From contig NC_088855.1 of NCBI RefSeq assembly GCF_963853765.1, forward strand, positions 14,446,001 through 14,510,000: 64,000 nt of DNA. The letters run 5' to 3'. Both the position numbers and the translations under genes were made by a program. Shown here one piece after another: positions 6,134 to 30,188 of the stretch. This DNA comes from Magallana gigas (Eukaryota). The notes beneath the pieces were generated by a model. It was not told the origin of the DNA and searched no databases. It saw only the letters and a program-made list of their open reading frames with translations. Every line of letters begins with the position of its first letter. Position 1 is the stretch's first letter.

Positions 6134-6170
<37 letters not shown>

Positions 6171-6259
6171 TTTTCTTTATATATATAAATATACGATTTT
6201 CTTTATATATATATGTAGTTTTCTTTATATATATCATGTGGCACTTACGGGCTTCCGTA
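5390..6259. mobile_element. Foldback non-autonomous DNA transposon, IS3EU-like
   Basis: Termini TACGGAAGCCCGTAAGTGCCACATG... / ...CATGTGGCACTTACGGGCTTCCGTA. 6-bp TSD GCTCAT at 5384-5389 and 6260-6265. TIRs over 200 bp are built of (TA)n-AAGAAAA subrepeats. TAY..RTA ends with a 6-bp TSD match the IS3EU superfamily description. Confidence 0.75.
5449..5604. other. Assembly gap (156 N) inside the left TIR of the foldback element
   Basis: Run of N. The flanks match the reverse complement of 6201-6259 and 6050-6114. Confidence 0.99.
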
Positions 6260-6393
6260 GCTCATGTTGCTAAACATGCATATCTAGATGAACACTGATA
6301 TATATTTGACATGGTAAAGCTAAGTATTCATTTATTCGAGGTTGTTGTTTACACCTTTAATGGTATAAGTACACTTTTTAGATAGACTCTTAC

Positions 6394-8840
6394 TATCATT
6401 TTGGCATCCGTGGGTAGAATTGCAGTAAGCCTCAGAACAGTTGTTTGGGTAATTATTGCAGGAGGAACTGCATCGCTTTCCATAATGTGGATAATCGCAC
6501 GCTTTGCTGCAATTCGCACTATAAAACCCCTGCGGACACTCTGTGTAGAATTAATTATCATTTTGTTACACAACAGGTATATAACATAAGATTTGATAAC
6601 TTTGAAAAAACAAATGTTGTCATTAATTAAATACTCGAATATAAGCGCTTGCCTCTAAAGAACACTTCTTATATCTCTATAGAAGCCACTATTAGGCTTA
6701 CACCTTTTTACAAAGTAGTTTAATTCGGTCCCTAATCAAGTGTTCTTGAAATTATTCTATAAATAATAAATCATCAGATTAATCCTTCATATATGTAACT
6801 TTTTTAAAATTATAATGAATTTTAAGCGTATATACTTGGTTTGTGAAATTTACATCTAAAAGGAGAGAACGAGGGTCCACATCTCTCTTCTGAGCAATTT
6901 TAGAGTATCAAATACAAAATATCTAGACTTTTAAAAACTTTCTCGAAACATACCTACGTAAAAATTTGACCTCCGTGTTGCCTAAGCCTACCCACTAGAA
7001 TGATAAATAGATCAAAGTTGAATTTTCACTTCTTGAGGATGCTTTCACTCAAGTTACAGCTTTAATGGCCGAATGGCTTTAGAGAAGATTTTTTTCCAAA
7101 TTCAATATATTCCACTGTAAAGATTAGACCCCCCCCTTCCCAATGTACCTCCCCCCCCCCCCCCCCCGGGATTTGAACAAACTTAAATCTACACTACCTG
7201 AGGATGCTGAGGTTCAGTTTTTCTGGCCAAATTTGTTTAGAGAAAATGTTTGACAAATACAAACATATTTTTAAAAATTCAAAATTATCTACCCTTTTAG
7301 GAGGTTCATGAGGACGTGGCCTTTATTTGAAGAAACTTGAATGTCTTTCACCCAATAATGCAATGTGCCAAGTTTGGATGAAATTGGGCAAGTGATGTTT
7401 GAGAAGAAGATGAAAATGAAAAAAGTTAACAACGATGACGACGCAAACGACAGACAATGGACACAATTTTTTTTAACGTTCCCGAGCTTTCGGCTCAGGT
7501 GAGCTACCAATATCTTTAGTAAGAAAGATGTTTTGTTTTCTTGGGTTTTTTTTACATGGTTACACGAAATACATGTACTATTAAGTCAAGATATAGAGCA
7601 AAATTTGGTGCAGTTTAATATTTTTTAATGGCCCCACTAAAACTAGACGAGAGAATTCGTGATTTATACAATATTATTAATCATCAATCACATATTACAA
7701 TTGGAGGAAAATCGTTATCGTAGTACTTCTTTAATCTGCTTCGAAGTGCGAAAAATGGCAATCTCCTACATATTCCTTTAGTATATTGAACCTCTTTTTG
7801 AGATTTTGAGATGGCCCAAAAAGGAATCAGAGATTGGTAAAAAAAAAAAATGAGCTATTGATAATGACCACGGGTATATTTAAAGACTTTGGTCTCAGTT
7901 TCCAACGTTGGAAAAGCAACCCCGGATCAATATTTAACATTGAAATATGACACCCTGTTCAATTTTTAATCTGGGTCAAAATTCTTCAGTACACCGGCTC
8001 TGATGCTAAATGATTCTTTAGGAGTTGTTTATGTTTGAGATATACAGTGTATAATTGCATGGTAGAATCGGTTAATCATGTCGACATATTTTCTGTCTTC
8101 ATGTTGTGAATATTTTAAAGTGAAGATACGTAAAATAAATAATTTACGGGCAGTACGGACAACGGGCTGTCAAGCATTGAATGTTAGAGCTTGTTTATAT
8201 GGGCGAGATTGATTGAACGACACGAGTGACTCGGGTTGCCAGAGTTGTCAATAAAACATGTATTTCACGACACTAGTGTTGAACCCGTGTCACAAAAGTT
8301 TACTCCTACTTTTAAGCTAGTACACTGTTCAAATGTCAATGCACGACGCACGACGTCGGAAACAACGGGACAGCAATATTCTTTTTGTTTTTTATTCTAA
8401 AAGTATGGGCATAGTACATGTAAGTAATAGACTATCCAGATAATGAACAAGTATAAACACGCTTTTTGCTTATTTACTATTTGGATTAAAATATTAGCAT
8501 AGGTATACAGGTTTACTTTATGCAAGCTCTATTGACTTAGCTCTTACTTGTACCTTCTATTCGTCAACTGAAAGCCCGAACAGCATTTACTGAAAGTAAA
8601 AAAAGGTTAAGTGAAACACAAACTAATTAAAATTAGACTTGTAATTCCGCTCCTCTACGGATTACAAGTCTAATTTTAATTAGATTGAGTGAAACACAGT
8701 GTAATGAAGGCTTATCGTATTTTTTTCTCTCCAAATATCCACCTACAAATTCCTTCTGAGTTGTTTCTTCCGCAGCATCCTTGGCTGGTTACATTACTCA
8801 ATTCAAGCGCAAAACACACTAACCAGAAATACCTCTTCAT
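6394..8840 (-). pseudogene. Receptor paralog R1: signal peptide + CC module + EGF-like exon; frameshifted, no TM exon found
   Basis: Exon 1 8840-8743 (MKRYFWLVCFALELSNVTSQGCCGRNNSEGIC). Exon 2 from 8589 (KCCSGFQLTNRRY); its available GT donors (after 8554 or 8548) give phase 2, whereas paralogs have a 44-bp phase-1 exon. Intact 147-bp EGF exon 6540-6394 (CPQGFYSANCSKACDYPHYGKRCSSSCNNYPNNCSEAYCNSTHGC). Confidence 0.7.
6865..7506. mobile_element. Helentron-associated non-autonomous element
   Basis: 3' end ...gagctttcggctcaggtgagcta with a small GAGC/GCTC hairpin (7484-7496), preceded by gac/gacaga-rich tracts. A similar end occurs at about 26890-26927. Family assignment is from recall of bivalve repeats, not a search. 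Confidence 0.5.
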
Positions 8841-9785
8841 TCCAATACAAGGCAGCAATAAGAAATTTATAAACTTTCCCCATGTATAGTAAAATATTAT
8901 GAAAAAAATACATATGGTTTACAAGGAAATAAGACTATTATATAATTAGCATGTTTAACTATATGTGTATTGTTAAACACACCCCGTAATATCTCATGTT
9001 AATTTCCTTTACATTTTCTATTCTGGTTCATCTTTACGAAGAAATCTAATTTTGCAGATTCTATACTGGTCAGAATTAGATTTAAAGTGAGGAGAAATTA
9101 GTACTCTTTTATTTTTTCCGTAACAACTGGCTGCATATACAACTTATAAAAATTATTTTCAAATATATATAAATAAAAAAATATTGCATTCAATAAAATC
9201 ATTACTTTGCATTGTGGTAAATGATTACATTTTTTTTTTAAATCCAAAATGAATATTGCACAGGGAGTAAAGAAAGTGGTTGTTTAAGGTGGCTGAATGG
9301 TAAAATAAATACCCATCAGATCTGCCTTAAAATTTGAAAAAAAATGGGCTAAAAATCATTACATGGTTGGAAACAATCCAAAAATATCTACATGTAGCTT
9401 TAAAATTCAAACACTTTCATATATCTTTATACGGAGCGCCTCCTTTAAAAAAATACACTGTAAATGTAACCTTAAATGGTTACCACTATCAAGCCTTCAT
9501 TTAAAATGTTTCTTGTCAAGCTCCAGAAAATTATCTGTTTTCAATATATTGCATTATAGAGATATTTTGAAGTCCAAGGTTCCTAACGCAATTCATGTTT
9601 CCTCTCTAACTTGTATTCAGCTACAGTAGTTAAATCCACCTAATGAAAAATGACAATAACAAACTGTAAACCATCTCAAAAATCTATAAAGCAAAATACG
9701 AATTTAAAACAGAGCGACACGGGCCTCCAAAACGATAGAGGTGGGATCAGGTGCCTAGGAGGAGTAAGCATCCCTTGCAGACCGG

Positions 9786-12497
9786 TTTCATATAGTGCCT
9801 TTTCCCCTAGCCATCTTTCCCCCCGGAAAAAAGGCTATATAGCATTTTTTCCCCTGGAAAAATAGCAATATAGCAGTTTTTCCCGCCACGGAAAGCTGAC
9901 TATATAGTGGGTTTTCCCCCTTTTAATAGCCAGATTACCCCCACGGAAAGCGTACTATATAGTAGACACTGGCGTCGGAAGCAAATTGAAAGTGGGGGGC
10001 TAGACTAATCCTAAAAAAAAACCTATTAATTCCCAAAATCATGGAAATCCTAATCCGTGGAAGGGGGGGGGGGGGGTATACCTATACTTCCCCCAAAAAA
10101 TATCTTACCTACCAAATTTTCTTTCCCCCAAATCATGAAATTCCTAATCCGGGGGGGGGGGGAGGGCTTGGCTAATATGTCTATGACTCCAACTTCTCAA
10201 TCTTTCAAGGTAAATTAAGGAACAATTATCTTTGCTGCGAGAAAAAGGGGGGGGGGGCTGAACCCTTTATGATGCTATGTCCCAAATGGTTAGGTCTAAC
10301 TTTGCTAAGCCCACCCCCCCCCCCCCCGGTTCCGACGCCTATGGTAGATTTTCCCCCTTTTTTACATTCCGGTTATGGTTATGGCGGACCATTCGTGGCA
10401 ATAATTTGCAATAACTGATATGATATTAATTTCTCATTATAAAAGATAATAGTGACATTTATTAATACATAGTAAAAAAATACATGAGGTTTTTCATTCT
10501 GATATGAACAAAGGCACGCTCCTTCATAACATTCCTGTGTCATCACCATTCATTTCACATTCTGTTACACCTTTTTGGGATACCTTTTATTCGAATTTCG
10601 GAATATCTCGAATTTTTTTACTCTAATCGGTGCTTATCTACAGTTTTGACTTTGACGTTAGACATGGACATTTTTCACAGAACATATCAGAATACATTTG
10701 AGTGAAAATACGCCGGCTTGGAACTTTAATTTTGCCATGTATTATCATCTATGTATCAATTCCTCCAAGGAAACTAACTGACCAATCTTGACTTAATTTT
10801 GTAGAGGAAGGAAAAAGAAGTGGAAATATATTACCCCCTTCGTCCAAAAGGCTATAAATTTTAAACTTATACTGTTAGAATTGGCCATCTTAAATATAGT
10901 TATATATTTCTACTTCTAAATATCAAACGAGTAATAGGGTGCAATGATACGATTGAGAAACTGAAATGTTTTACTTCGATTAGTGGGGATCTAAATCATG
11001 GGTAAGGGGTATTATAATTGATTATGTATTAAAGCATGTGTAAAGTTAGTATTTACAATTTTGTTTTTGAGTCACGCATATTCATGTTCATGTTTTTAAG
11101 CACATTATTTTACGAAACGCAAGTTTTTATGATGTAAACAATTTAAAAAAAAATGAAATGGCTTCAAAACCAGAACAAAGTCGGTATCTTTGCTGGTTTC
11201 TTCGGAAAATGTAAAATGGAGTCTAAACTAATCTTTTGTATATATTATCATTCACTGTGTGCTAATTTGTTTCGCTTTTTATTTTGCACGAGATTTAGAA
11301 ATATACAATTTTAAAAACAATGCCATGTAAAACAAGATATACGATTCACTAACCTAAAAATCTTATCATACTATTTATTTCAGATTTTTGCAATAAAGAT
11401 TTACTTGTTTACCATATTATTTCTTCGAACATTTAAACAATGGTAACTGAAAATTAGAAAATTAACACATTTTTTGTTATGAGCTGGCTTATTTTATTTT
11501 TTGAAATATGGTTCTTCTAATCGATTGGCAAGTAAAAAAAAGTCGTATATCAAAGGCGCTGTTGTTGGTTATTTATTTTTGGTTTTTTTTTAAATAAGAT
11601 TTTATTTATTTCATTATCTAATTATTTATTATATTAGTCTTATGAATATTTTGAAGAATAATGAATTTACCCGTGTACCTTTTGTAAATTTTTTGTTCGT
11701 AAATTCAAAAAGAAAAGACTGAATTGAACGTAATTTTCAACTATATGATAAAGAAATGTATGAGTCAATGTATTTTTTTAATGATGTAGTTCTGTTGAAT
11801 AAAATTGCAAAATAATGAGATCTTTAAAAATCAAGGAAATAAACAAAAATATCACGTAGGCTCTAATTGGACGCATGCAGCTGTATGCACTGTACTCTCT
11901 TTATGTATAGTTATATTGGGACGCAGCAACATTTATGCAGCGAACACTTTTCGTCTATACTTATTACGGACGCTTTATTGAAAAGTGGCTAAGGTCTGAA
12001 CACACTGTTACTTCATGAGCGATCATTCAGTTCTTCCAAAAATTCTCTAGAACAGAGGGTGAGCCTGGACAACAGACAGACGGACTGTTAGATTTATATA
12101 AAAAATTCTCAAAACATTTCATTTACAAATTCAGAACACAGAGTTATGCATATAAGTGCATATCTTGTAAAACCAAATACTTTTTCAATAAAATTACCTA
12201 AATGAGGTTCTTTGTAAGTATCTAATTCCATTACACACAATTTTAGGCATTGTCTATAAAATTAATAAATCGGCAAAACGAAACTTAACCTGTACAGAAA
12301 CATTGATTTTAATCCTTGTTGGGTTTCCGTAATTTTTTTTTATAAATTCTGAACCAAAAACGTAAGGGAAAACCCTACTATGGGGGAAAAGCTACTATAT
12401 AGTAGCTTTTCCCCCCAGGGGGAAGGGCCACTATATAGTTTTTCCAGTAGGTTTTCCATGGGGAAAAGCTACAATGGGGGGAAACTGCTATACAACA
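9786..12497. mobile_element. Ginger1-like non-autonomous DNA transposon (2.7 kb)
   Basis: CCGG direct repeat at 9782-9785 and 12498-12501. Ends TTTCATATAG (probably TGTC.. mutated) / CTATACAACA. Subterminal arrays of CTATATAG + TTTTCCC/GGGAAAA at 9790-9960 and 12370-12497. The flanks rejoin into one dispersed repeat (...gcagaCCGGtcgcacccgcc...). Confidence 0.7.
9967..10343. mobile_element. MITE nested in the Ginger-like element
   Basis: TIR CACTGGCGTCGGAAGC / GGTTCCGACGCCTATG. GTAGA direct repeat at 9962-9966 and 10344-10348. Poly-G/poly-C tracts inside. Confidence 0.7.
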
Positions 12498-13081
12498 CCG
12501 GTCGCACCCGCCAGGTGCTCTTTGTCAAGATCATGAAATACGGAAGAAACCGTAGTCAGTTCGGTGTATAAATAATGGTCTAACAAGTATAAAAAAAAAA
12601 CGTCAGTCAGCATGTATCCTAATGAAACACTGTACTTCCTGACAAGGCCATTGTATCGACCCTAAAACTTTCGTTTAGATGATTTTAATCGAGGATTTTG
12701 ATATTCTTGTTCCAACAACTTGTTTGTAATTAGCATGTTTTGTTTGATAAATGGTTTGTGTTAAGAGCATGCTCTTGCATAACGAATAAGCTGAGAGACA
12801 TAATCCCCATAAGCAGGTGTATGATGCTTTGTAATACTTGTACTTACTTCCTGTTCTGTAATGAACACTTCGTTAAGAGAGCCATGTTGTCTCTTTGAAT
12901 CATTGTATTGATATTCAACAGATTCATCCTTTAAGTAAAGGTAAGTGGTGAAATGGAAAAATATTTATGCAAAAGTGTATTGTTTGACAAATGTACATAA
13001 AGAAAAAACGAGTTATCAACTTGAAGCGTAAATGACCATAATGATCAACGGAATTCAGCACAATGTAGAGCTTGTATTTAA

Positions 13082-13487
13082 AGGGGCATGGTCACGATTT
13101 TGGTTCAAATTATTTTTTCAATTTTAATGCTTACAATGCTTCAGTAAGGTATTCTTAATAGGCAACCAAAATTTGAGTGTCATTTGTTGAGTTGTACGCA
13201 AGTTACGGGGCTTACAATTTTTTGCTATGTAAACAAAGCTTTTGTTTATATTTTGAATGTTGAAGTAAAAATTCCAATGTTGAATGAGTTAAATGCTAGA
13301 AAATGCTTATTTATGTTCAGAATGAATAAGAAGATAGACGGACCAGCTTTAACAAGATTTTTTCTGGTATATTAAACCTATGTAAACGACTGACTCTCTT
13401 TTTTTATCATTTGAAATCCATTTAAAAGCATTGTAGATAATTAAAACAGAAATAAAAAAAATTGACCAAATTCGTGACCATGCCCCT
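13082..13487. mobile_element. Kolobok-type MITE (copy 1)
   Basis: TTAA TSD (13078-81, 13488-91). TIR AGGGGCATGGTCACGATTTTGG / CCAAATTCGTGACCATGCCCCT. RR..YY ends with TTAA are Kolobok-type. Confidence 0.85.
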
Positions 13488-13685
13488 TTAACAAGATAGA
13501 AAGGTGAATTTTTCAAATATATATACGTATGATTTATATCAGTGTCTTTCTAATAATGGACAAACTTTATATAGTGAAATGATGTGAATAATACCTAACC
13601 CATTTTTTACACTTATCAGTTATGAATTTGTATTGCCTTTGTCACAGCGCAAGTAAGTGTTAGACCTACAGTTAAGAATTTTTCT

Positions 13686-16600
13686 TCAAGCCTCATTTGA
13701 ACCTATTTCATCACAATATGGGTTGTGTACAGATGCTGTTTGATCAGTGTTTTGGTCAGATAATGATTCCATATGCATGTACATGGTTGTGTTTCTGGGT
13801 TCACTTACAGACTTCGTACCACCCATGTTGTCTGCTTCACTTAATCGGACAATCTTAGAGTGATCTTGATAAACTGGAGGATTGTTGATGCTGTTGCTAC
13901 TAGCAACTAAACCACGGTCAACATTTTGGTGGGATCTGGCACTTAACAATCTGAACTCCTGTTCACTTGGTTGTGAAACAGTCATTGATTTGTCAGACAA
14001 GCTGCCACGTCTTCTCCTTAAAATCAAGAGACAAATTAGTCCCAAAATGACAAGAAAGCTCATTGCGAGGGTATATCCGAGTGATTTTACGATAGAGGCC
14101 GACAAGAGTGAGTCTTTTGAATTACAACGCGTCCCAAGGACTTCTCTGGCTGATGTATTAATATATATAGTAGCCATTGGTCTTGTAACAACATGGTTGG
14201 TCTGTTTTCTTGAAGAATCTATGGGCATGTTAGTGAAAAGTCCGCTACCTGAAAATAAAAGGCATATACTATAAAAGTATATAAAAAATACTCAAAAATG
14301 CATTTTGTGTTATTTTCAGTTTTTTAAACTCACTTTTTCAAAATACTGATTCAACTGAATAGAATTTCAAGCCATCAAAGACGAGGGACAATTTGTCAAA
14401 ATGTTATACTTTTAGCATGAATTTACCATTTATTGTCTCTTCCCTATGTCTTTGAATAAATTCTGAAGTTCCCACTTGCGAGTCTTTGTTAAGTGTCGTT
14501 GAAGTTTGAAGGCCTACAGACGTGAAGTTAATTTAAATGTATACTGCACTTTCATCAATATTTGTTGACCTGGCCCATGAGGTTAAATACTAAATGATGG
14601 TCAATGCTATGCGATATATAATAACAAATTACATGATTAGGATCATTGGCCATGGATTTACGTATCCTGATTTTTCAGGGATGCTAAAATTCTACTAATT
14701 GGACCAAACAAATCTACCAATTACACTTAGTAGACCTATTATTGATAAGCTTTTGTTTACTTCCTTATAGTTCATATAACATTAATATATTCAATATTTC
14801 CTCAGTCAATTTTCTTACTTCTACGCATCTTTGGTTTTTTTATTTTCAAAACACTGACTAATAGAACCGTGGACTATTGATTGTCTACAACTACATATAT
14901 TTTATTGATATCGAAATCTTACACTTATCAACAAATCACACAATGACCTGGCTTAAAAAGTCTTCAATATTATGAGGAACATTTTGAAAATCGATAAGAG
15001 TGTTCTTAGTTTAATGATTTTTAAATCTATTCTGATTATGTCATACAACTGCACATGTATCTTATCAAACTTTTGCATTGAATTGATTTTAGTTTTGTAT
15101 GGTCTTTGTATTGAAAATTGAATAAATTTGTATGAAATCTGTATTTTCCAAAGAAATAGTACATGTATATGCCGTTCATCTGTTAAAATGACAGTATTTT
15201 TAACCGCCTACCAGTGTTGTATATATTTTACTTTGCAGCTTGGATCAATGTATTTCCTCAGATTGTAAATGCTAGATTTTTATTTTATTTAGATTATTAT
15301 TATTTTTTTTGGAAATTCGATTGCACTAGATAATTAAGTATAGAAAATGGAATTTTCCATTCCAACACCGAAGGAAAAGGCAAAATGGCTCTATACAACA
15401 CTAAGGTTTTTATTGTAAAAGTGAAGAATTATGGTGAACTCTAGACTCATATCTACTTATATCCCTTTTTCCTATATAAGGTACAGGTCTGTCGATGTGT
15501 TATGTCATCTTGCAGGAAGAAGTTTCACCATTTAAAAGAAAACATTCAATTTCTTATTTTGTGCCTTGTCCAATTAAACAAACTTATAAATAATAAGTAT
15601 GAAAAACACCTTCATAATTAAGGGTAAAAAACTGGTATTATTTCAGAGAGAAATCAATATCGACGGACAAAGGTTCTTTTGTTGATATGGTTAGTTAAGA
15701 TGCATCGTTGACGTTTGAAATGTATATAATATATTTAAGAAATATTACCATGGCTTTGACATCCTAGAGCAGGATGGCAGTCATCTCTGGAACAGTTGTT
15801 GGGATCATTGCTGCAAGAAGATCTACATAGGCTTCCATACCAAGGATAAACACACTTTATATTGCATTTGTCACCGGAATACCCTGGCGGACATTCTATA
15901 AGAGGGAAAATACTACCGTGAAACAATTATTTTAAATGAATGAAACACAACGTCACAATGCCAGTATTCAAGTATAATTTATTAATCGTGTTACATTGCT
16001 TGAAAATATATTTACAAGTAAATTATAAATGCTGGCGTTGTGGTAGTCCATGTAAATTTGGCATATTTCAAATCTAATAGATATTAGGTATGTCCAATTA
16101 TATTTCAGTATGGTTATGTTATTTTATCAAATGATAATAATAATCTCTATTTGTTTTTGGGAAATAATGAATATCATATCTTATTTCTTATAAATTTATA
16201 TCTTATTATAGAGGTGATTTTCTTTAAAAATTTAATGGTAAGCAATTTTATGATAGGGCAAAGTTTGATGTAAAAAAAAAATTAAGTGACTTAAGACAGA
16301 ATATTGAATTTGGTTTATGTCATACCCATGATACTTTCAATTGACGTATTTCTCCGAATCAATATGATGAATAAAAATCTTTCCAAACCCTCAGTGATAC
16401 ATAGATTACGTTAAACATTTAATGACTTCGATTATTAAATGCTTTTGATTTGAATTGAGTACATGTTTGATCCATGTTCAATGGTTAGAAGTAATTGCAA
16501 GCGAAAAGGACTTTTAATTATCTGATAAGTGAGCTATTTACAAGTTTTCTATTAATATTAATCGTAGTGTGATAAATGTACTCAATTCAAACCACGGACA

Positions 16601-16996
16601 CAATAACTCAGACGTTAAAACTATCTAGTATCAAGTATTTAAAAATTTAAATATGTTCTTGAAAATGTTACAATTAATAAAATTCAATTATAAAAAATCA
16701 TACAATAGCATTAGATGTGAATGAATTACATTAAAAATACCTTTACCTTGACATTTTCCATTGACCATGTGATAACTTTGACAACATTTTCTGAAACGTT
16801 TAAAAAGATTTTTGAAAAATAGTTTTATATCTGATGGTACATATACTTTGATGTATTTTGGCATTTTTGAGATGTTACTTTTCCTCGCCCAATAATATAC
16901 CTACATGCATACTCCTTCATGTATACCACAGCATCCAAAGTTGGTTGCATCACACAAATCAAGCAACAAACCAATCAACCAGACAAACTTCTTCAT
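13686..16996 (-). CDS. Receptor paralog R2: type I membrane protein, miniature MEGF10/Draper-like (about 310 aa)
   Basis: GT-AG exons 16996-16905, 16790-16747, 15895-15749, 14513-14427, 14248-13686 total 933 nt and give an open frame: MKKFVWLIGLLLDLCDATNFGCCGIHEGVCIKCCQSYHMVNGKCQECPPGYSGDKC...HPALGC, stalk, TM (SLGYTLAMSFLVILGLICLLIL), RRRR, then tail. Confidence 0.85.
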
Positions 16997-17099
16997 CGTT
17001 GACTTAGATGTGTGTGTAAATTATAGATTTACGTTGCTCATGAACAAACAAAAATAAACAGTTCATGGTGCAAACGGATATCATGAAAGAAATTCCCAC

Positions 17100-17101
<2 letters not shown>

Positions 17102-17169
<68 letters not shown>
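17102..17169. repeat. (TA)n microsatellite, about 34 units
   Basis: Read directly; about 105 bp upstream of the R2 ATG. Confidence 0.97.
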
Positions 17170-17172
<3 letters not shown>

Positions 17173-17882
17173 TGTATTTCCGACGTCCGTGCCAGCTCGT
17201 GACTGGTTTTTTCCCTTAATATATGAAATATTAACACTTTTAAACCAAACTTAAACATAAGTAAGGGTGGTTGTATTCATTCCCTTACCATGATCAAAGA
17301 AAAGCCTTCGAATGAGTGAAGATCGTGCTTAACTTGAATACCTGTTCTACAGGTTATTCGCTACAAATAGTAGGCAATGGCTACAGGTTCAAATATATAA
17401 AAGCAAAACATATTACACGTGTTCTAGTACCTAGGATAAATTAATTTATACGCAAGTACCTTTAAACTTGATATTCAGGTTAAGAACTCTTTTTTACTTG
17501 ACACGATTTAAAGAAGGCGATGATACAATCTTAACAAGTGTAATATGTGGTTCAGTCCTACAGATTAAATATATCTTATTTAAACATGACTAATGCATCT
17601 TTCTTACAAAAGATACAGTCCCCCAACAAATTTTAATAGGATTCTTTGTCTACAAAATCATCCGGAATTATCACGTCAAAGCAACATTGAAACGTGTTTG
17701 TTCCCATACTGTTAACATAATCAAGACAATAAAATACAGTAAGAGTAAAAATATTGTCATTTATTGAAAAAAGAGGCAATTGTTTAATAAAATGTGGCTG
17801 AAAGACCTACAAACAGTTAACTAAATAAACTACAAAATCGAATTACAATGGAAACAGAAGTGATTTATTTCAAATTTAGAAG

Positions 17883-17885
<3 letters not shown>

Positions 17886-17930
<45 letters not shown>
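17886..17930. repeat. (CT)n microsatellite
   Basis: Read directly. Confidence 0.97.
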
Positions 17931-17933
<3 letters not shown>

Positions 17934-19437
17934 ATGTCAACATTGGTCATGGTTTTTTTTTTCAACTTTCATTACATACGTGTCTAAATATATCCTCTAT
18001 ATTCTCTCGAGGAACAAATAAACAATAAAAATGTAAATTAACATGTTTTATTTATTTCCCGTAACAGGCAGTATATGCATCTAATATAGAAGAATGTTCC
18101 TTGTCACAGACGTTTTAAAAAAATAACTCAAAACTGCATAGAATCCAAGAAAAAATAATACGGTATGGGTAGATTTTTGGTTTAAAAAACAAAGATTATA
18201 ACATATACACACATCATATATCAAGAGGTCAACAAATTACCAATCAGACCCAACTTAGAATATTGAATGGTATCTTTTCAAGCCATAAGCCATAATTGGT
18301 TAGTCCATACAATTTAAAAATTTTAAATTTAAATATTTTCTTATATCTTTCTTAAGAGCTTTTTTTCTGAAGGATAATATAGTTTTTAAATAGCCACAAC
18401 CAGTCGGCCCAGTAGTCTGCTTGGTACTTAATTTTTATTCAATACACTATAAATCTTTAAATTCCAAAAGCCTACAATATGGCAATTGTTCTTTTTATTT
18501 CTTAAAAACTTGTCATAAATATTACGATTTACCTTGATATATGTACACTATGTTATTTATAACACACAATGGGACTACCAATTTAGTTGCATAAAACATA
18601 TCATGAAACATGTTTGTATGTTGGAATAAATTCTGTATGTGTTCATATTTACTACATATATTCAAATGCAAATTAATAAATATCACTTATATTAGAGACA
18701 TAAATAACAGAGATTGCCAACTTCGCCATAAGGGTGTTTCCTTGTTGAAAAAATGTTACTAGACCAACCTCACTTTGCGAACTACATATTAATAACCTGA
18801 GATAATGATCTTAAACCAAAAGTACATGTCTATTTTTTCATGAAAAATACACAGGTTTTAGACGTTTTTGAAACAAAAAATTGAAAAATAAGATTGATAT
18901 ATAAAAAATATATAGGCCAGCTTTAAAACATCGACGAATTCTCTGACGCTGGGTAGCCAACTGCCTCCTAAAACTCATCTTTTTATATTGTTTATTAGAC
19001 ATAAACTCATGAATATATAATATTTTGAATGTTTCGGTAATAGGGTTTAGCTGTTTATATTTTGATATAATCATTTGTTTATTAGAAAGATACACTGAGT
19101 GAATTAAAATAGGAATACTATACAATAGGGACCGCGAGATTTCGATCAGTTGCCAATCTCTGCTATTTATGTCTCTGCTTATATTGTTAAAAAAAACAAA
19201 CAAACCCTACTGTGCAAGATAAATATACCAGTGCCAATTAAACATTTCTGCTCCAGTCTGAGGTGTAATTTTCTCTTGTTTTATATTTTCCAAATCTATA
19301 TTTATCAAATTAACCTTACTGTCTCAGATTCCATTCTTAAATGTCATAATACGTAGTCATAGTTTACGACAACAACCACAGAATAGTAATTAAGCGTCAT
19401 TCATGTAAAAGTTTTCTGGAGCCTTACACATCAAAGC

Positions 19438-22253
19438 TTATGATTGAACACCGTCTGTTAAGGTTACATCAATATAAGATGGGTTGTCAACGGACGTCTC
19501 GGTGTCAACTTCTTCTCGTGATATCGGCTCCATGTATGTGTTTGTGGATTTACCAACCGATTCCTTCCTGCCTTTGTCGTCTGATCTTCTTAGATGAGAA
19601 ATCTCTGAGAGACCTTGATAAAGTGAAGAACCGTTCATGCTGTTCCTAGGGATGTCAGCTACACCGTCCACACTTTGCTGAAGCCTTAATTCATGTTCAG
19701 CTTGTGAAATATTTAGCAATTTACCTATCGCGCCTTCTCGTCTTCTTTTACATATGAAGAGACAAACCAGTCCCAGAATTACCAAAAGGCTAACTCCGAG
19801 GGTATATCCAAGGATTTTCACGACAGACACCAACCAGAGCGCTTCGGTAGAAGTCTTGTCATTTCCATGGACTGCTGAAGTAGGTTTATCTGTATATAAT
19901 GGTGTTACGTGTCGTGCAACAGTAGAATTCACTTGTTTTTCTAAAGAACTTAAAGTAGTCTCGGCGATGATTCTTCTACCTAAAGAAAAGGGAATTTGAT
20001 AAGCATGACTTATCTTACTAGTACTTTTAAATCGAGTTTTGGCTGTTGTAATTTTCCAAAAGTACATATTTTAAACATTTTTTTCTATTAAAAGCTGAGC
20101 TCGTCAAAAAGTTACCAATACCAACAGATCCACTATTTTCTATGGCAGGAAACGTTTTAGATTTAAAAGACAAGGCACATGTACCAATCGACTTTATTTT
20201 TGTACTTGATTGCTGAACAAATATATATTTACTATTTGTTGTTCTCTGTCGATAGCTCTGTGTAATATATGATGTTCTCTTTTGCAGATCTCCCGTCGAT
20301 GTTTCTCTAAAACCTGCAAATGAGACATGAAAGTCGTAACAAGGCTGAATTCCTGTTTGTTATTTTTAAGTCAAAAATTTAGCATTATAGTTTTGACTGG
20401 TGAAATACTTAGTACGGTCTACAGTCTACTCAATTTCACTAAATTATAATTACAATTAAAGAAATGTAAAATCTGTTATGATTGTGATTACGCGATCTAT
20501 ATAGTCATTTTTTGCATAAAAGTATATCAAGAATTCTGAAGTTGACTAATGATCTATGTTTGTCACTTCTAATAATTTAAAAAAATAATTGACATTTCCG
20601 ATAAAAATGAAATTAAAAGGAGATATCTTTTGAATAAATATCCATTGCATTAGCTACAGTTGTTAATCATGTATATTTTAATTTTAATCATAAATCTGAA
20701 TAATCTTTTGGCTATCATAAATATACAGTTCTAAATAGAAAATATATTAAACTGTTGTTTTTTTATATATTTTTTTGTAGTAAAAGCTTCACCGTGCCAC
20801 TACATGTTCAATGACACTGCTTTACAAACACGGAACTCTCTCACCTACTCTTTTGGCGTGTGAAATGCAAAACGCGTTCCTCTAACAAGGATTTCATACA
20901 AAATTCATATTGTTTCTGTAGAGGGGTTACATACATTATTATCATTTAAATGGCAAAACATCTTATAAGTTGATGTTGTCAAACGTAGCAATGGGTATTT
21001 AGATATGATTAATTTGAAAAATGAATATTTATTTTCAGATAAAATTCGCAAGCAAACGTGAAACCTCAAACGTAATGTAAATGATAATTAGAGTAAAATA
21101 TCTAACCCTTGTTTTGGCATCCAAGAGCCGGGTGGCAGTCAGGATAGGCACAGTCACATTTGGACCCACATTGCACTCCATACCAGGGGTATGCACACTC
21201 TGTGTCGCACTTGTCACCAAAAAACCCAATCGGACATACTGTATTAAAGGAGAAATCTAATTGGCTAAAGACCGTACAACTACGAAAAATAGAGGAATCA
21301 TGTTTAACATAAACAAATTCAATTTCAACATACAAATATCAAGTTGGTGGGGGTTCGACAATATTTCTTTTAGTTCAATCATTTGTTCTGATTTATTCGG
21401 TTTATTATCGGGTGGAGGTTGCTACTATTATTAGTGCTATTATTTCAAAGTTCTTTTTTTTATAGAAAGAATACGCTTGGTTACATTAAATTATGACATT
21501 AAAAACTTAATTATTATTTATCGTTATTTATTCTTGATTAGCAAATTATGATATAAAACAAATTGATAAAGTATTGAATCGTAACATATTTTAGTGCTGT
21601 TTCATGATCCAAATAAGTGTTAAAAGATTGAGTTGATGAAAATCAGAGAAAATACTTCCGCTATTAAATGACAATCCAATACATATATAATGGGTTTATT
21701 TAATGTGTCAAACAAGATGCTTACGATGCCCCGTCCTCAATTATCCCTTATAATTCATTAAAGGACTCATACACTAGTATTATCTGTTCATACATGTATC
21801 ACAGATTAGGCAATGACTAAATGAAGGAACTAAAGTTTCATACAAATCTGTTGATTTTGATTTATATATAACGGATAACATCTTTAAGATGGTAACAATG
21901 CTTTGCGCTAATAATGCACTTTGTGCAAAGTTTCCGTGAAAATTATTCCAAATAAAAAAACAATACTTGACAATAATCTTAAATCAATATATAAGATGTA
22001 TCGACTAACCTTTGCACAATCCGTCAGAATTGTAATAATTCTGGCAGCATTTACTGAAAGGAAAGTTAGATACGAAAAGTTAAAATTGAAACACCACATA
22101 GATTGTTTGAGAGAAACATTTTAGGGGATCTCAAAACGGCAACATCACTGACCTACAAAGGCCATCGACACCTATATTTCCGCAGCATCCAGCTCCATTC
22201 TCTGCAAAACACAAATCAAACAAGAGGCAAATAAACCAAACATACTTTTTCAT
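19438..22253 (-). CDS. Receptor paralog R3: type I membrane protein, miniature MEGF10/Draper-like (about 299 aa)
   Basis: Exons 22253-22153, 22053-22010, 21238-21107, 20313-20233, 19979-19438 total 900 nt and give an open frame: MKKYVWFICLLFDLCFAENGAGCCGNIGVDGLCSKCCQNYYNSDGLCKVCPIGFFGDKC...HPALGC, stalk, TM, KRRR, and a tail with SLYQGL, TYMEPI and NPSYIDV. Confidence 0.87.
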
Positions 22254-22727
22254 CTCGACCAAATTCATCGGAACAATGTTGATTATTGATTCATCTAATA
22301 CTCATACTAATGCATAAAGTGTTAGTTTCCCCTTTATAAATATGTTATTCACGGAAATAGGGTAAATTTTTGAGGAGATTGAATGATTTCGCGAAACCTG
22401 TGCAAGCTTGTGTCTTCCCCGTGTCCATTTCGGATTGTCTTAATGTGTCTCTGTTTCATATGCAAAAAATTGCGAACCGGCCCGATCCGAGTAGCAGAGT
22501 TGTGATACAAAAAAATACGAACACCATACTCGATGTTGTCATGGTTCAGGTTATTATTTGTCAGGTTATTAATATCTGGCTTTTAATTTTTCATCTTATG
22601 ATAAATGTTCCAAATTGCAAAATTTGTTTTCCTTGTGTAAACAAAACTTCCTGTCAATATATGATTGAATTTGTATATATTTTTTTTTGTCCTACTTCCG
22701 TTTTTGTTTTCTGTTTTAATTGAAATT

Positions 22728-23045
22728 TTTAGATGTGGTATGTTTGGCTAAAAACTATAATTTAACAAAATCCTTTTTTGTTTTTGTTATATAATCATAA
22801 TTAAATATGTCCCTATATCTTCAACTTCAACAGAGCTTCATTGTTAAAATTTTTAGATGTTATATGTTTGGCTATAAACTATAAATTAGCAAAGGATAAA
22901 TCCTTATTTGTTTTTGTTGTTTATTTTTTATCCTTTTATAATCATAATATGTTCCTATATCTTCAACTTCAACAGAGCTTCCTTGTTTAAAATTTTAAAT
23001 GTGATATGTTTGGCTATAAACTATGATTAAACAAGGGACAAATCT
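22728..23045. repeat. Imperfect tandem repeat, about 2.5-3 units of 120-145 bp
   Basis: ttttagatgt..tatgtttggcta.aaactata recurs at about 22728, 22850 and 22992; tatatcttcaacttcaacagagctt occurs twice. Confidence 0.75.
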
Positions 23046-26000
23046 TCCTCTTTTTCATCAAAAACACAGAAACCGGCAGTGTCAATATTTAGCGACATTT
23101 TCCATCGGAATTCTTGTAAGCCTTTGTGGTATTGTCTGTATCATTCATGAAGATTGTAAGTTTAAATCATGGCGGTTTGATTGAACGGATGGATTGGGCG
23201 TCTAAATCTTACCCGAAAGCATCAGCTGGCCATGGATTCTTTACACTCCACGTGTTCATGAAGAACGCCATGATGCGAGGCATCCAGTCGGAAGCCAGTC
23301 GCACCTCATGATCGAAGCAATAGTCGTTAATATAATTATAATCGCTTTATATGATATTTAATACAAGTTTTGTTAGCATTTTACAATGATAGAGAATTTG
23401 AGATTTAAAACTTGTACGGATACGCGAACCTGTGTAAAAACTACACGTACACGTTTTTGTAATTTCTTAACTTGTAGGATATAAACGTGTATATAGTATA
23501 TCGGGTATTACTATGTTTTCTGTATGATATCATCGTGTCTTTATTGAAGCACTGAGGTTAAACCATTTATCTAACACGTTTTTATTTGCTAATCCCGAAG
23601 GCATCATGTTGAGAGCAACCTAGACGAGGGCAAGTAAGACCTAATCCCCTTACATGCTGAGCAGAGCAGGTCCTACCACTACAGCTGCGGTCGTCGCTGG
23701 AGATCAACCACGGGCACCGTTTCCCAGTCAAGTGAATACAGAAACCCTTTCCCAGACAACACCTATGGACCAAGTCCCCAACGTACAAGCTTCTGTTGGC
23801 CAAGGTAAGAATATATTTCCTCCAAACCCTGCACCGTTGTGTAGCGTCACAGGTGCCGTAGGCGTACCCATCAGCATTAGTCATTGTTATATTTTGCAAT
23901 GAATTCATTCAGTTGCACAAACTCTTGCCTACCAAAGCTAGTGAAGAGCCGCAACAACAATTTGCATTTGTTAACGGCTAAATAATTATTAAGCCTAAAA
24001 CTAAGGAAGCTAAGACCAACAATATTGAAATATGGATCAATGCACCCCCTTGTTTACACTAGTTTTCGCTATCGAATGCCAGTTGAGGATCGGCGTCATA
24101 CATCTTTTTGTCAATTGCATTGAAATCTCAGATTTGCTCGTATATTTTGTGTAATTCGTATACAACTGTGTTTAATTATCAAATAGTTATACCATATGTA
24201 GCAATAATAAAGCAATGACAATGCAGCCATTCGAGACTTACTACCCTTGTTGGTAAGTTCCATTTATCGAAGAAGAATACACTTGCGCATGTCAACAATA
24301 GCATTTCCTCTTTTTAATCCTTAATTCACTTACTTTATGTATTAGATGCTAATTTATACTATAAGGATAAGTTACCCAAGTCTTATCACTATCTTGGCTT
24401 TTAACAAATGTCTCCTTTCTCCTTTTTGGTGTTGGTTTATTTTTATGATTTCAGATAAGAATCCAGTTTCCTCTACGTCATGGCTTTGTCCGTGCGTCGA
24501 TCCTTGCAAGGGATACAGATTTGCTATAGAAGCCATCGCTGGTTAACTGCTGTTCTCCTTCCATGGTTACCAACAATTCATGGCTCATTATCATTGAATT
24601 GACATTGAACTGTTGGCTACCAAATGCCAATTGATGATATTTACCATACGTATCAATAATAAAGCCATGACAGTACAGCCATTCATCTTCTGTGTCTTCT
24701 TTCACGATTGTACATGAAATTAAGATATAAATATTGAATATAAATATGAAATTTTTATTGGTATCGCAGAATATAATTGGATTTTAGTTTTATAATATGA
24801 TTCAAATTACTTCGACAAATCATATCGTATGATACAATGACACATTATATATTATAAAAATGTTTATATCATGAAATATTTACTATTTCATGTAAGTTAT
24901 TTTAAAAACCATATGATAACGACTGATATTTTTTATAACTTGAAAAACAATAGTTAAATCTATATAGTTATTGATATATAGTTATAAAATAGTTATATCT
25001 ATTGACCACGCTCCGATGCTCATGCTCCTTATTACTTATATTTATATTATTTCCAATTTTTACACTTTAAACAACATAAATTAAAGCCACCATTTTATCT
25101 TCGCGGCGAATACCGGTTTTTTATTATATAAGACACATCCATTTTGTGTTGCTCATTTTTTTTTATGAAATTAATGGATTTTAGGCTTCACAATTGATGT
25201 GTAATGTTATCACAGACAAATACAGTAGAAAATGTAAATATAAATGGATATTGAGTCATTAGTTTCAGATGCTGTGGGAAGTTAAAGCTATATGATTAGG
25301 CAAAAAAATTTTTAAGGAGGTTGGCACATGAAATAGTAGTAATGTCAATCATCCGGAAACCACTTGGATATAAAGATGGGAATCTAAAATGTTCATTTAT
25401 TTAATTTGTGACCCATGCCATTTTTGGAAATATATGGGCCCAAACAAAATTGATAATTTTCCTGAAATCAAACAAATGTTTATAGTTTGAACTATTATTT
25501 AGTTATGATTTTAATACAGTATGAAGTTGAACACATATAGTGACTATAAAAGTAAAATCTAAGTCAAAGTTTTTAACTTCTTGCTTTACTGGTGGCTTCA
25601 AAGGCCAGTACATAATGAACACAACAACAGATGTTACAAAATTTTGCAGTACTCAAATTATAACGTAAATTAAAAAAATTATAGTAATATCATCTTTCCA
25701 AAACTTTGCATACAGATAAACATACATTTAATGTCTCATTTAAGAGTAAAACAAGTAGGGGTTACATCTCAAAAATTTGAGATGTAGCATGAAATACTTT
25801 ATGCCTTCTATGAAATATAAGCTAAATATGCCAAGATGTACTGATAGAAATATCGAAACATTGTATAAATATGTTTTTAGAACATTATGAATACATCGTA
25901 AAACACAAACTATCTTGAAGTTTGGTCTGCGCTGAAAATTAGGAAGCTAAATTAACAGTACTCAGGGTTGAAAATGCATGAGTATTTGGGTCTTCATTCG

Positions 26001-27086
26001 ATAGGTTTGTGATAAACCTTTGCTTTTCTTGAAAGCTTATAAAATTGTCGATTTATCCATATACAGTTCGCTATTTTTCTTCTATCATTAAGACCATGGA
26101 CTTTCGGTAGGACATAACAAGCTATTTCTTTAAAAGATAAAAATGGCGCTGGTTTCAAGCGAAATATGCACCGATTGCGTAGTCTTAGCTCAAAAGCCAG
26201 ATCTATCTTGTTGATTTCAAAGAGCCAAGGCCCATGGCTGAGTGGCTAGCAATGAATTAGACAGGCCTACGTCACATTGCTGTTTGACACAACTATTAAA
26301 AGTCCAAGCTCTTGTTTAAATAGTTATGAGAAAAATATTGAAAAGCGTTTTCCTGCAAAGAGGTCAGCGAGCATATTAAATAAAAAACGTACACTGCATT
26401 ATTTTATAACGCAGGCATGTACTGGCGTAGCAGATACCTTTTTCTCGTAACAAACATTTTTCAATTTACATACTATAGTATAGAAAATATAAAGTTGAAC
26501 GAGTGGGTTGGTTGATGGTTGAAATTTATACAAAAACAATACCCCTCCCCCCCCCCCCACGGATAAGGATTTTGGGGAATGGGGGGGGGGTGAGGGTTGT
26601 CGATAGCCCCCCCCCCCCCCCTCCCCAATTTTAAAAAACGATGCTACGGGCCTATAATGTACGATATTTTCTTTTAAATTCTTGTATATTTGATAGCTAA
26701 TATATTGCTGATGATCTTTCAAAGGTAGTTTCATTTGTTGAATTTTGTACATTGCATAGCAACATTTCAAATTTCCGAAAACAAGAAAGGCGAGGTGATT
26801 CGACTGTACAAGAGCAAGTCGAATCCACTTTGAAGTTTTTCAAGACAATGACGACAACTTGAAGGACAGACAACGGACTTATTTCAATCAAAAATTCTTG
26901 TTTGAGCCTTTGGTTCAGGTGAGCTGAAAAAAAAACCATAAGCCAAATTGTACTTTTGTTTCTAATATTAATCACAATAAATCTGTCCAATTTCGAACAG
27001 TTTTCTGTACAACTTGTGTGTCTATACATGCTATGGAAAGATTAAAAAAGTAAATTCGTTTGATTTTCCGGAGCCTCGATCATATT

Positions 27087-29850
27087 TCATGATCGAACAC
27101 TGTCTAATAATGTCATATCTACGTAAGATGGGTTGTCGATGTCAATACATTCCCGTGGTATCGGCTCCAGGTATGTGTGTGTGGATTTACCGACTGATTC
27201 CTTCCTCCCTTTGTCGTCTGATCGTCTTAAACGGGGGTCAGCAGAGAGATCGTGATACGGTGCAGAACTATTGATGTTGTTTCTGCTTGTGTCTACCACA
27301 CGGCCCACATTTTGCTGACAACTTGCATTGTACAGTTTTAATTCCTGTTCACTTTGTTGTAAATTATTCATTGATTTGCCTGGAGTGCTTTCTCGCCTTC
27401 TCTTGAATATGAAGAGACAGACTAGTCCCATATTTACCAGAAGGCTAACCCCGAGGGTACATCCAAGTATTTTCACGACAGACACCAACCAGGGCGCGTC
27501 AGTTGTATTGAGGTTTGTCCCAGCGACTGTTGTACCTACATATATTGGCGTCGCGGGAGTTGAAACATTAGAATTGAGTTGCTTTTTTGAAGAACTTTGA
27601 GTTGTTTGTGTGACAATTATTCTACCTAGAAACAAAAGGAAAGAATATAATATATATACTTCTGATTTATTGATTCTGAATATATGGAATACTAGTATAT
27701 ATGGAATTTGAGTTCCTTTGACGACAATTTGAACGTACTTTGACTTTTTGATCAAATATATACATTCTATCAACAAAACAAGAGGACATTTTTCATTTTC
27801 CGAGTATCATTTGCAAGTGCTTCCGTTAGTCTCTTTGACTGAAGTGGCTCTTCTACAACACAGAACGCCCCTACTTAATTCTTTACTGAACGATATGTCA
27901 GACAATTTCCACTCATTATTGTGATTTTCCCCAAAAGTAAATTAAAAACCTTTTTGAAACAGAAGAGATATTTTTTCCTTACATATGCAATGTTTTCTTT
28001 TTTACTACAGCAAAGACATATATTTCCCTTCTTGTGTTAGCTTTGGGGCGTCTTGGATTTTATGCAAAGGAATAAGATGCATTACAAAAATCTAACCATT
28101 GTTCTGGCATCCTAGAGCAGGATGGCAATCGGCCTTGGAACAGTTGTTTGGGTAGTCCGTGCAAGAGGAACCGCATAACGCCCCATACCATGGGTAAACA
28201 CACTCCGTGTTGCACTTATCTCCAAAAAATCCCAGCGGACACACTGTATAAGAGGATAATCTTATAACAGGAACACAATTTTTCATTAACGAAATCCTGT
28301 ATATTAAACCCTGTGGTTTTCATTATATTTCGTTATTTTTAAGTGATAACAATCGTTTAGTATGAATTTTAACGCGCTTGTCATTTTTACTATCCTTCAA
28401 CTTGATCCTTGTAATGTTTTCAATGTATGGTTTGGTTGTTGGTTTTTTTGTTTTTGTTTTTTTTTTTTGGGGGGGGGGGGGGGGGCTGTTGTTTTTTTCT
28501 ACATCATTCAAGAAAAATATCAATGACAAAACTTTGACTTTACATCAGTTATTATTTCCGTAATTTTGATCGCTTTATCCATATATATCCTGAGCGTACA
28601 GTGAGTATATATATGAGAAAACTAGAGCGGATGCGTATATTTTTGCCTGATCAACATATAATATAGATTACTAACACTCTTAATAAAGTAAACAGTGAGT
28701 TACTTCCTTGATCCCTAGTACAATGGTATTCCTGTAAAAGAATATTAAAACATGACACTTTTTACGCTAATATACGGTAATACGTATAAAGAACTATCAT
28801 TGCCTTAATTAACTTCAATTATGTTGGAAGTGCTACTTACAATTTTACAACAACTAGGTTTTTTAAAAGATCTTCTACATAGAAAAGACCATGGGTTATA
28901 AAGGTCAACTTGGTATGCTAGCAATACAGTCCTATGATCGATCAATTATGGGTAAATCTCTCCCGTTCTGCCATTATATTGGATCAGACAGTTTGCACGA
29001 ATAACAGTGTATGGGTTCATGTGAAGATCTACAAATTTTCACCATTTTTGATACTTTAAAAAATGGAATTGAAGAGTGTGATAATGGTATGCTTCATAAT
29101 TGTAAATGTCGCTCTGTACTCCGATCAAGTATTCTTTACTTAGAGACGAGAGTAGGGAACCTTTGAACATAAAAACTTCACATAAATGGCCAAATTTTAG
29201 TAGAGGCAACAACACTCGTAATAACTATATACTTTGTCGATTGGCTGGATGTCCAGCAGACGAAAAGAGAGCTATAAAGAATAATCTTAGAATTAGCGTT
29301 TCCCTTCCCTATCGGGATCTAGACACAAAATTGATCAAAAGTGGCTGAGTAGCCATGTTTCAAAGTCATGACCGACGCACGAGGGATCACACATGTCGAT
29401 GGAAAAAATAACAGTAAGTATTCTGAGACACACTGGTGGCCGAAAAATTCATGTTATATTGAATTAAAAAATATCAATTATTGATATAATAATTACATAT
29501 TTTTTCTACCTGAAGCCACAAAATCTAATAGTGACATGTATGGATCTTTGATGATTACAGTATGAGTGTGTTTAATCAATTTACCTTTGCATATTCCCTC
29601 CAAAAGGTGGTAATTTTGACAGCATTTACTGAAATTAAAATACGATAATTTTATAGTCCAAATAAATTAAACAGCAAAAAAGTTTTAAAATTTAGACAGA
29701 AGATACTCATTTCCTTTGTCTTCTTAAACATAACTAAATCATCACTAACCTGCAGATTCCGTCGACGTCTATATCCCCGCAGCATCCAGAGTCATTCTGT
29801 GCCCAACACAATTCAAGCGCGAAACACAACAACCAGACATACCTCTGCAT
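27087..29850 (-). CDS. Receptor paralog R4: type I membrane protein, miniature MEGF10/Draper-like (about 276 aa)
   Basis: Exons 29850-29750, 29628-29585, 28243-28097, 27625-27087 total 831 nt and give an open frame: MQRYVWLLCFALELCWAQNDSGCCGDIDVDGICSKCCQNYHLLEGICKVCPLGFFGDKC...HPALGC, TM, KRRR, and a tail with PYHDL, TYLEPI and NPSYVDM. No separate stalk exon was resolved. Confidence 0.85.
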
Positions 29851-30188
29851 CTCTGCAGTGAAAAATTTTAACAACGTAGTGATAAATACATATTATACTT
29901 TGATGAGTAAAGCGTTATTGTGACTTTTAGCAATATGATTTATACGGATATAGGGTGAATTAATTTGTGGTGAGTGTGTGTGTATTCGCAAAGCCCGTGT
30001 TTATATATTTCGAATTGTCTTGTGATTCTGCTTCAACCATTAAAAAAAAGCTAATCTTTACACTTGAACTGTATTTGTTGCAAAGACATACAAACGGTTC
30101 TGTATGTTTCATGCGTATTGTGGCGTAGTTTTGCCATCACTTGTAAGATTTTTATGTCGACTTGTCCGATATATTTATGTCGACTTAT

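Follow-up and report, generated by a model that had tools for sequence, protein, structure and literature searches.

The R1-R4 cluster and its splice structure

The stretch of DNA analyzed here (the window) comprises 64,000 nucleotides (nt) of the oyster Magallana (Crassostrea) gigas, contig NC_088855.1, positions 14,446,001 to 14,510,000. It is AT-rich (about 32% G+C) and carries, between positions 6394 and 29850, four tandem paralogous genes, here called R1 to R4, all on the minus strand and sharing one exon plan. The plan consists of an exon encoding a signal peptide and a GCCG..GxC motif, a 44-bp exon with a KCCxxY..GxC motif, an exon of 132-147 bp with eight cysteines (8-Cys), an optional stalk exon, and an exon for a transmembrane (TM) helix and a cytoplasmic tail (Table 1). 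The module exons were located by a six-frame motif scan and then by tblastn with the spliced models, both applied to the whole 64 kb. The scan returned three copies each of CPxGxxGxxCxxxCxYPxYGxxC and CHPALGC, and tblastn added the R1 copy, which brings the 8-Cys exons to four. The signal/GCCG exons and the KCC exons also number four each, the CC..GxC motifs being paired upstream of every module, and no further copy of any of these three exons was found elsewhere in the window by either approach. AG and GT sites with matching phases are present at every exon border.

An earlier note on this DNA, made from the sequence alone, had described four same-strand paralogs with a single exon architecture, the exon sizes given above, and eight invariant cysteines, and had proposed that R2, R3, and R4 splice to open frames. 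The motif scans, the tblastn searches, and the splice borders confirm this description, and the cluster is real, with frames of 272-310 amino acids for the three genes. R4 encodes 276 amino acids, no stalk exon being found for it, and its 3' untranslated region reaches at least to position 27016 on a transcript contig (L001 in Table 1). R3 encodes 272 amino acids, or 299 when its 81-bp stalk exon is included, and R2 encodes 281, or 310 with a stalk exon of 87 bp. The similarity between R3 and R4 (68%) also extends some 125 bp beyond the start codon in the 5' direction (22143-22381 versus 29740-29976), which indicates that the duplication unit takes in the proximal promoter or the 5' untranslated region.

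Table 1. Coding exons of R1 to R4 in window coordinates. L001 is a transcript contig from Logan, P numbers are database proteins, and pLDDT is the predicted local distance difference test score.
Gene	Feature	Coordinates	Strand	Support or remark
R4	Exon 1, coding part: start codon, signal peptide, GCCG..GxC	29750-29850	minus	L001 block 24-128 on 29854-29750; RefSeq XP_034337937.2
R4	Exon 2, 44 bp, KCCQNY..GIC	29585-29628	minus	L001 block at 100% identity
R4	Exon 3, 147 bp, 8-Cys EGF-like module	28097-28243	minus	L001 block at 94% identity, 9 mismatches in 151 nt; AlphaFold2 pLDDT >90
R4	Last exon, coding part: stalk, TM, tail with YHDL, TYLEP, NPSYVDM	27087-27625	minus	L001 block 319-930 on 27626-27016 at 99.8% identity
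R3	Exon 1, coding part	22153-22253	minus	Junction present in database protein P0015
R3	Exon 2, 44 bp, KCCQNYY..GLC	22010-22053	minus	
R3	Exon 3, 132 bp, 8-Cys module	21107-21238	minus	100% identity to RefSeq XP_034337936.1 (P0215)
R3	Optional stalk exon, 81 bp, phase 1-1	20233-20313	minus	In RefSeq isoform P0215 and in P0015
R3	Last exon, coding part: TM, tail with SLYQGL, TYMEP, NPSYIDV	19438-19979	minus	Logan and RefSeq proteins P0004-P0007, P0215
R2	Exon 1, coding part, GTAGGT donor	16905-16996	minus	Junction also in UniProt K1QBW9 (P0011)
R2	Exon 2, 44 bp, KCCQSYH..GKC	16747-16790	minus	
R2	Exon 3, 147 bp, 8-Cys module	15749-15895	minus	
R2	Stalk exon, 87 bp, phase 1-1	14427-14513	minus	Spliced contig of run X1; translation in UniProt A0A8W8JYP5 (P0309)
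R2	Last exon, coding part: TM and tail, NPYC in window allele	13686-14248	minus	
R1	Exon 1, coding part	8743-8840	minus	Intact; 94% identical to C. angulata XP_052712825
R1	Exon 2, 36 bp instead of 44 bp	8554-8589	minus	Compared with P0157, P0010, P0011
R1	Exon 3, 147 bp, 8-Cys module	6394-6540	minus	Intact

Transcription and existing annotation

Spliced transcripts of the cluster are present in public RNA data. A search with the last exon of R4 retrieved the 276-amino-acid protein on a 930-nt Logan contig, whose four alignment blocks end at the exon borders of our model, all R4 junctions being matched. This contig derives from run SRR12564935, a poly(A) RNA-seq library of mature gonad of C. 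gigas (PMC10294476), and transcript contigs identical to the R4 model come from several Logan runs. Fourteen runs from five studies, probably of RNA, contain about 30% of the words of 19438-29400, which is roughly the exonic share of that segment. As for R2, one contig of run X1 omits 14245-14424 with GT..AG borders on the minus strand, which supports the stalk exon and the acceptor at 14248. Coverage of R2 was otherwise very low in the four chosen runs whose reads were mapped over 13600-19599, this being the only spliced contig, and the same mapping also showed signals from an R4 transcript. In all four mapped runs the segment 18600-19200, between R2 and R3, displayed high depth, many variants, and loose ends, a pattern that fits an expressed interspersed repeat.

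The suggestion that these genes are hidden, in the sense of being missed by automated annotation, was not borne out, as R1, R3, and R4 are all in RefSeq and R2 is in UniProt. R4 is XP_034337937 (LOC117692835), our model being identical residue for residue to XP_034337937.2, and corresponds as well to C. angulata XP_052712869 and UniProt A0A8W8JUM2. R3 is XP_034337936 (LOC105331351 isoform X2, with the stalk exon included), R1 is XP_034337935 (LOC105330859), and R2 is represented by K1QBW9 and A0A8W8JYP5. Nearly all of these entries are named 'uncharacterized protein', the exception being A0A8W8JYP5, which is an 'EGF-like domain-containing protein'. K1QBW9 (P0011) fuses exons 1-3 and part of the last exon of R2 to an R1-type KCC exon, which points either to transcriptional read-through or to a chimera of neighbouring paralogs in the gene model.

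R1 is defective in this assembly. Its second exon lacks 8 bp, including the Gly-Lys-Cys codons, relative to other alleles (P0157, P0010, and P0011), and because of this deletion exon 3 is out of frame. A sensitive tblastn search with R1-type tails found no TM/tail exon in 1-6393, a stretch that includes a run of N at 5449-5604, where the missing 3' exons could conceivably be located. At 81-1219, on the minus strand and just downstream of the expected position of the R1 3' exon, there are two overlapping open reading frames (ORFs) of 244 and 152 amino acids. Because the 244-amino-acid ORF matches retroviral-type aspartyl protease models, this segment is probably a gag/protease fragment of a long terminal repeat (LTR) retrotransposon.

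Homology and predicted structure of the module

Searches against Pfam returned nothing above cut-off for single exons or full proteins, and the EGF_PEAR1L model gave only sub-cut-off matches, in the distant relatives P0014 and P0030. A word-based search with the ectodomain found two clusters only, and an exhaustive HMMER search was used in its place. When R4 was run with phmmer against 1.84 billion cluster representatives, 192 matches were obtained at E<=1e-3. The representatives whose source was looked up all come from pteriomorph bivalves (Crassostrea/Magallana, Saccostrea, Ostrea, Pinctada, and Mytilus). Most of the relatives looked up are 'uncharacterized', and some of the more distant ones carry the NCBI names MEGF10, MEGF6, or PEAR1-like. 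Among the top 156 relatives, a single module is found in 85 proteins, two modules in 25, and up to seven in a few.

A profile built from 60 sequences of the family (A1) was searched with hmmsearch against the PDB sequences, and matched 6u11_A, an 'EGF-like domain-containing protein' (E 8e-13), N-terminal fragments of human SCARF1 (8hna_B, E 1.8e-5; 8hn0_A, E 3.2e-5), and Tie2 (E 6e-4). In SCARF1 the alignment runs from a CCAGW motif to a CKPGFFG..C..C..YWG..C..C.C..C..G unit, with one intervening EGF skipped. AlphaFold2, given the profile alignment, predicted the R4 ectodomain with confidence (pLDDT >90 for residues 20-97), placed a signal-like helix at 2-16 and the TM helix at 142-177, and left stalk and tail disordered. 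The hydrophobic stretch followed by KRRR corresponds to a type I single-pass topology. When the model was submitted to fold searches, SCARF1 and Tie2 were among the best of the weak matches (31-40% identity over 43-67 residues; SCARF1 Z 2.8-3.0 in VIA-align), which we used only as agreement with the sequence result. The nearest language-model neighbours in the ESM Atlas are unnamed mollusc clusters, and the nearest named ones are MEGF10 and draper. Taken together, the profile, structure-prediction, and language-model results suggest that the module is a SCARF1/MEGF-type EGF unit, apparently homologous to the repeats of this kind in SCARF1, MEGF10, Draper, and Tie.

The oyster subfamily and its cytoplasmic tail

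All four genes share a doubled CC motif, in which the exon-1 GCCG..GxC precedes the widely conserved KCCxxY..GxC, and the N-terminal GCCG..GxC motif is the mark of the R1-R4 subfamily. The doubled motif is also present in Saccostrea cucullata XP_062594220, Ostrea edulis XP_048738236, C. virginica LOC111137767 and LOC111134958, and C. gigas LOC105330826. The cluster genes would belong to a small subfamily, conserved across oysters (Ostreidae), within a larger bivalve family of mini-receptors. In a maximum-likelihood tree of 15 subfamily members the relationships are mostly unresolved, with R1+R2 as the sole grouping (93/93).

The tail is about 110 amino acids long, and an alignment of Crassostrea, Saccostrea, and Ostrea sequences retains the boundary between the TM helix and KRRR, the basic sequence LRRxDxKGR, and three motifs built on tyrosine, namely xxYQxL, NTYMEP, and NPxYV(D/E)(V/M). 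NPxY and YxxL are the two motifs required for CED-1 signalling, and are also present in Draper and MEGF10. Both occur in R4 (YHDL and NPSY) and R3 (YQGL and NPSY); the R2 allele of the window lacks the tyrosine of NPxY, and the RefSeq isoform of R1 is too short to include the tyrosine motifs. Saccostrea and C. virginica have kept these tail motifs as well. Among the top relatives NPxY is almost confined to the R1-R4 subfamily. The tails differ between paralogs, R2 having NPYC and the RefSeq R1 isoform being short, and the SLYQGL of R3 resembles an immunoreceptor tyrosine-based inhibitory motif, as might be the case in paired receptors. The cluster proteins show none of the features of an activating partner, such as a charged residue in the TM helix.

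Selection and polymorphism

The ratio of nonsynonymous to synonymous substitution rates (dN/dS) was estimated between paralogs, region by region, with the Nei-Gojobori method (NG86). For the ectodomain dN/dS ranged between 0.10 and 0.33, a range that also holds with the cysteine codons removed, compared to 0.65-0.92 for the stalk and 0.36-0.50 for the tail. Short regions and saturation of dS (1.4-3.4 in the ectodomain) make these values approximate. Between paralogs the ectodomain is under purifying selection, and since its dN/dS is lower than that of stalk and tail, the inter-cysteine residues are the most constrained part of the protein. The earlier note had described the family as rapidly diversifying, which is supported neither by such values nor by a small subfamily whose relatives are conserved in Saccostrea, Ostrea, and C. 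virginica. Between two R4 alleles dN/dS was 0.4-0.6, and no comparison exceeded 1.

Within R4, two observations indicate unusual variability of the ectodomain. Over the 303 nt of exons 1-3 the window allele and the gonad transcript disagree at 12 nt, and over the 612 nt of the last exon at none. When ten full-length variants of R4 are compared, 9 of the 80 residues of the ectodomain are variable versus 7 of 179 elsewhere (Fisher p=0.046), a modest excess of amino-acid polymorphism in the ectodomain. The variable sites 49, 55, 57, 60, 64, 74, and 77 are concentrated in the first half of the module. R3-like database fragments (P0015 and P0025) diverge by as much as about 20% in the 8-Cys exon, or some 10 of its 45 residues, with R3 tails nearly identical, and in these data alleles and unassembled paralogs are indistinguishable among such fragments. 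Between the paralogs R2-R4, the proportion of synonymous differences (pS) is 0.65-0.78 in the ectodomain exons, significantly above the 0.40-0.53 of the last exon, a contrast that would fit a greater age of the ectodomain lineages or, alternatively, gene conversion affecting the 3' exon. One could speculate that the ectodomain polymorphism, whose R4 sites surround the residues that align with the SCARF1 homodimer interface, is held by balancing selection and serves allele-specific recognition (of self and non-self, of gametes, or of pathogen variants), while gene conversion keeps the 3' exon uniform, although we deem this very unlikely.

These data bear directly on the function that was first proposed for the cluster, namely a rapidly diversifying, haemocyte-expressed family devoted to immune recognition and phagocytosis. 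The architecture is indeed like that of engulfment receptors, as the profile match and the ESM Atlas neighbours indicate, the variability of R4 falls preferentially in the ectodomain both among variants and between the window allele and the transcript, and immune roles exist for SCARF1 and CED-1 (PMC2699123). The dN/dS values, between paralogs as well as between alleles, argue against it, however, as do the small size of the subfamily and its conservation across oyster genera, the absence of these loci from the supplements of a single-cell study of oyster haemocytes, and the origin of the full-length transcript in gonad RNA. All considered, an immune family of this kind is distinctly unlikely. 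The gonad origin could in turn suggest gamete recognition by a tandem family with a polymorphic ectodomain that is expressed in the mature gonad, from which the full-length R4 transcript was in fact assembled. Only this one tissue could be identified, however, and the gonad also contains haemocytes and somatic cells; many further runs, of unspecified tissue, contain transcripts of these genes, and positive selection left no signal. A role in reproduction would seem extremely improbable.

Proposed function

Based on the results above, we favour, with a probability of about 60%, the interpretation that the three intact genes and the defective R1 are mini surface receptors related to SCARF1, MEGF10, Draper, and CED-1, with a tail of the signalling type. 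The predicted protein would consist, in order, of a signal peptide, two CC..GxC motifs, the 8-Cys module, a Ser/Thr-rich stalk contributed in part by the optional exon, one TM helix, and the tail. The 8-Cys module would correspond to the CKPGFFG..C..C..YWG..C..C.C..C..G.C unit of SCARF1. The products of R2, R3, and R4 would reach the surface as receptors. Binding of a ligand or partner would fall to their one EGF-type module, possibly by way of the surface with which SCARF1 homodimerises. The tail might then signal upon tyrosine phosphorylation, by recruiting phosphotyrosine-binding (PTB) adaptors at NPxY, as CED-6/GULP is by CED-1 and Draper, and SH2 proteins at YxxL. That the cluster encodes type I membrane proteins with one module each, as the earlier note had it, is supported by the R2, R3, and R4 models. 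The likeness to CED-1/Draper/MEGF10 holds for the single TM helix and appears to hold for the module, but two features that define that family, an EMI domain and a long array of EGF repeats, were not found in the oyster proteins.

Several observations weigh against the interpretation of R1-R4 as signalling mini-receptors and account for our caution. No Pfam EMI or EGF model was matched even at E<=1 when five proteins were examined with hmmscan (P0187, P0157, P0012, P0013, and P0272). Foldseek and VIA-align on the AlphaFold2 model returned weak matches (E>=0.13, Z<=3.3), and such scores are common for small disulfide-rich domains. At the C-terminus of R2 (13686-13730) the window allele reads NPYC and other public alleles read NPYY, a natural Tyr/Cys polymorphism at the very tyrosine of NPxY, and the RefSeq isoform of R1 ends upstream of the tyrosine motifs. 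PTB and SH2 binding by the tail motifs is proposed purely by analogy, gonad is the only identified tissue for the full-length transcript, and searches of the open literature by LOC and XP identifiers, by PDB 6U11, and by oyster MEGF10, SCARF, and Nimrod turned up no study of these genes.

If the module does bind a partner, this need not be a foreign ligand. The homodimer of SCARF1 is held, according to mutagenesis, by F82, S88, and Y94 (PMC11563577). Both VIA-align, which places R4 residues 50-97 on SCARF1 77-121, and the hidden Markov model alignment match these three residues with F55, T61, and W67 of R4, which fall in the motif that is best conserved in the oyster module, G-F-[FY]-G .. C .. 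[YW]-P-x-Y-G. The module would thus be the counterpart of the SCARF1 dimerisation unit, and not of the distal lipoprotein-binding region. Position 55 of R4 is itself polymorphic (F/Y). It is conceivable that R1-R4 act as dimerising co-receptors or in cell-cell adhesion, pairing in cis or in trans with themselves, with their paralogs, or with larger MEGF/SCARF-like proteins. Such pairing would agree with the conserved interface motif and with the position of the lipoprotein-binding part of SCARF1, which is reported to be situated more distally in the protein and is without an oyster counterpart. The conserved aromatic residues, however, might be purely structural, and the AlphaFold2 model is monomeric and uninformative on interfaces. 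We regard this function as rather unlikely.

Whichever the partner, receptors related to SCARF1 and MEGF10, as we favour, would be of a kind that is already known, the EGF-repeat engulfment and scavenger receptors, of which a single module, a doubled CC motif, and a conserved tail make a lineage-specific variant. In common with SCARF1 (SREC-I, a class F scavenger receptor; PDB 8HN0/8HNA), the oyster proteins have stretches that align with its CCAGW motif and EGF unit, a type I single-pass topology, and the aromatic residues of the dimer interface. SCARF1, however, has many tandem EGF-like repeats, with an extra EGF between the CC motif and the aligned unit, a basic lipoprotein-binding region in its repeats, and a long Ser/Pro-rich tail, whereas the oyster proteins have one unit, the doubled CC motif, and the shorter tail with three tyrosine motifs. 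With CED-1, Draper, and MEGF10 they share the CC-motif N-terminus, a module that appears to be of the same EGF type, the single TM helix, and, in R3 and R4, NPxY and YxxL. They differ in that they match no EMI domain (PF07546), of which they have only the CCxx[YF] core motif, in having one module instead of 15 or more repeats, and in a tail that cannot be aligned. The Nimrod proteins of Drosophila (NimC1 and Eater) are also single-pass receptors in which a CCxGY-like motif precedes EGF-type repeats, yet the NIM consensus CxPxCxxxCxNGxCxxPxxCxCxxGY is absent from the spliced oyster ectodomains when these are read directly, and again there is one module only.

To our knowledge, bivalves have no adaptive immunity. 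Their genomes hold large and poorly understood expansions of EGF-type surface proteins, of which this cluster is a clean and small example. With three intact genes, one module in each, and a tyrosine tail conserved across oyster genera, it offers a tractable entry to the mini MEGF10/SCARF-like genes of oysters, and allows asking whether a single SCARF1-type module suffices for ligand binding or dimerisation. Our findings refine public predicted genes at the level of their annotation and do not amount to the discovery of a new system; their interest, which is moderate, lies in a minimal SCARF/MEGF-type receptor that keeps a conserved signalling-type tail.

Neighbouring sequence

Adjoining the cluster, an ORF of 205 amino acids at 33289-33906 (minus strand) contains several tetratricopeptide repeats (TPR; TPR_2, E 2e-17), and represents an exon of an unrelated gene for a TPR protein. 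At 34001-34499, about 500 bp match their own reverse complement (67%), and a related copy (77%) lies at 13078-13387, between R1 and R2; the two may represent an inverted-repeat element or one resembling a miniature inverted-repeat transposable element. A tandem repeat array occupies 44280-45071, its period being about 40 bp or a multiple thereof and its copies 76-88% identical.

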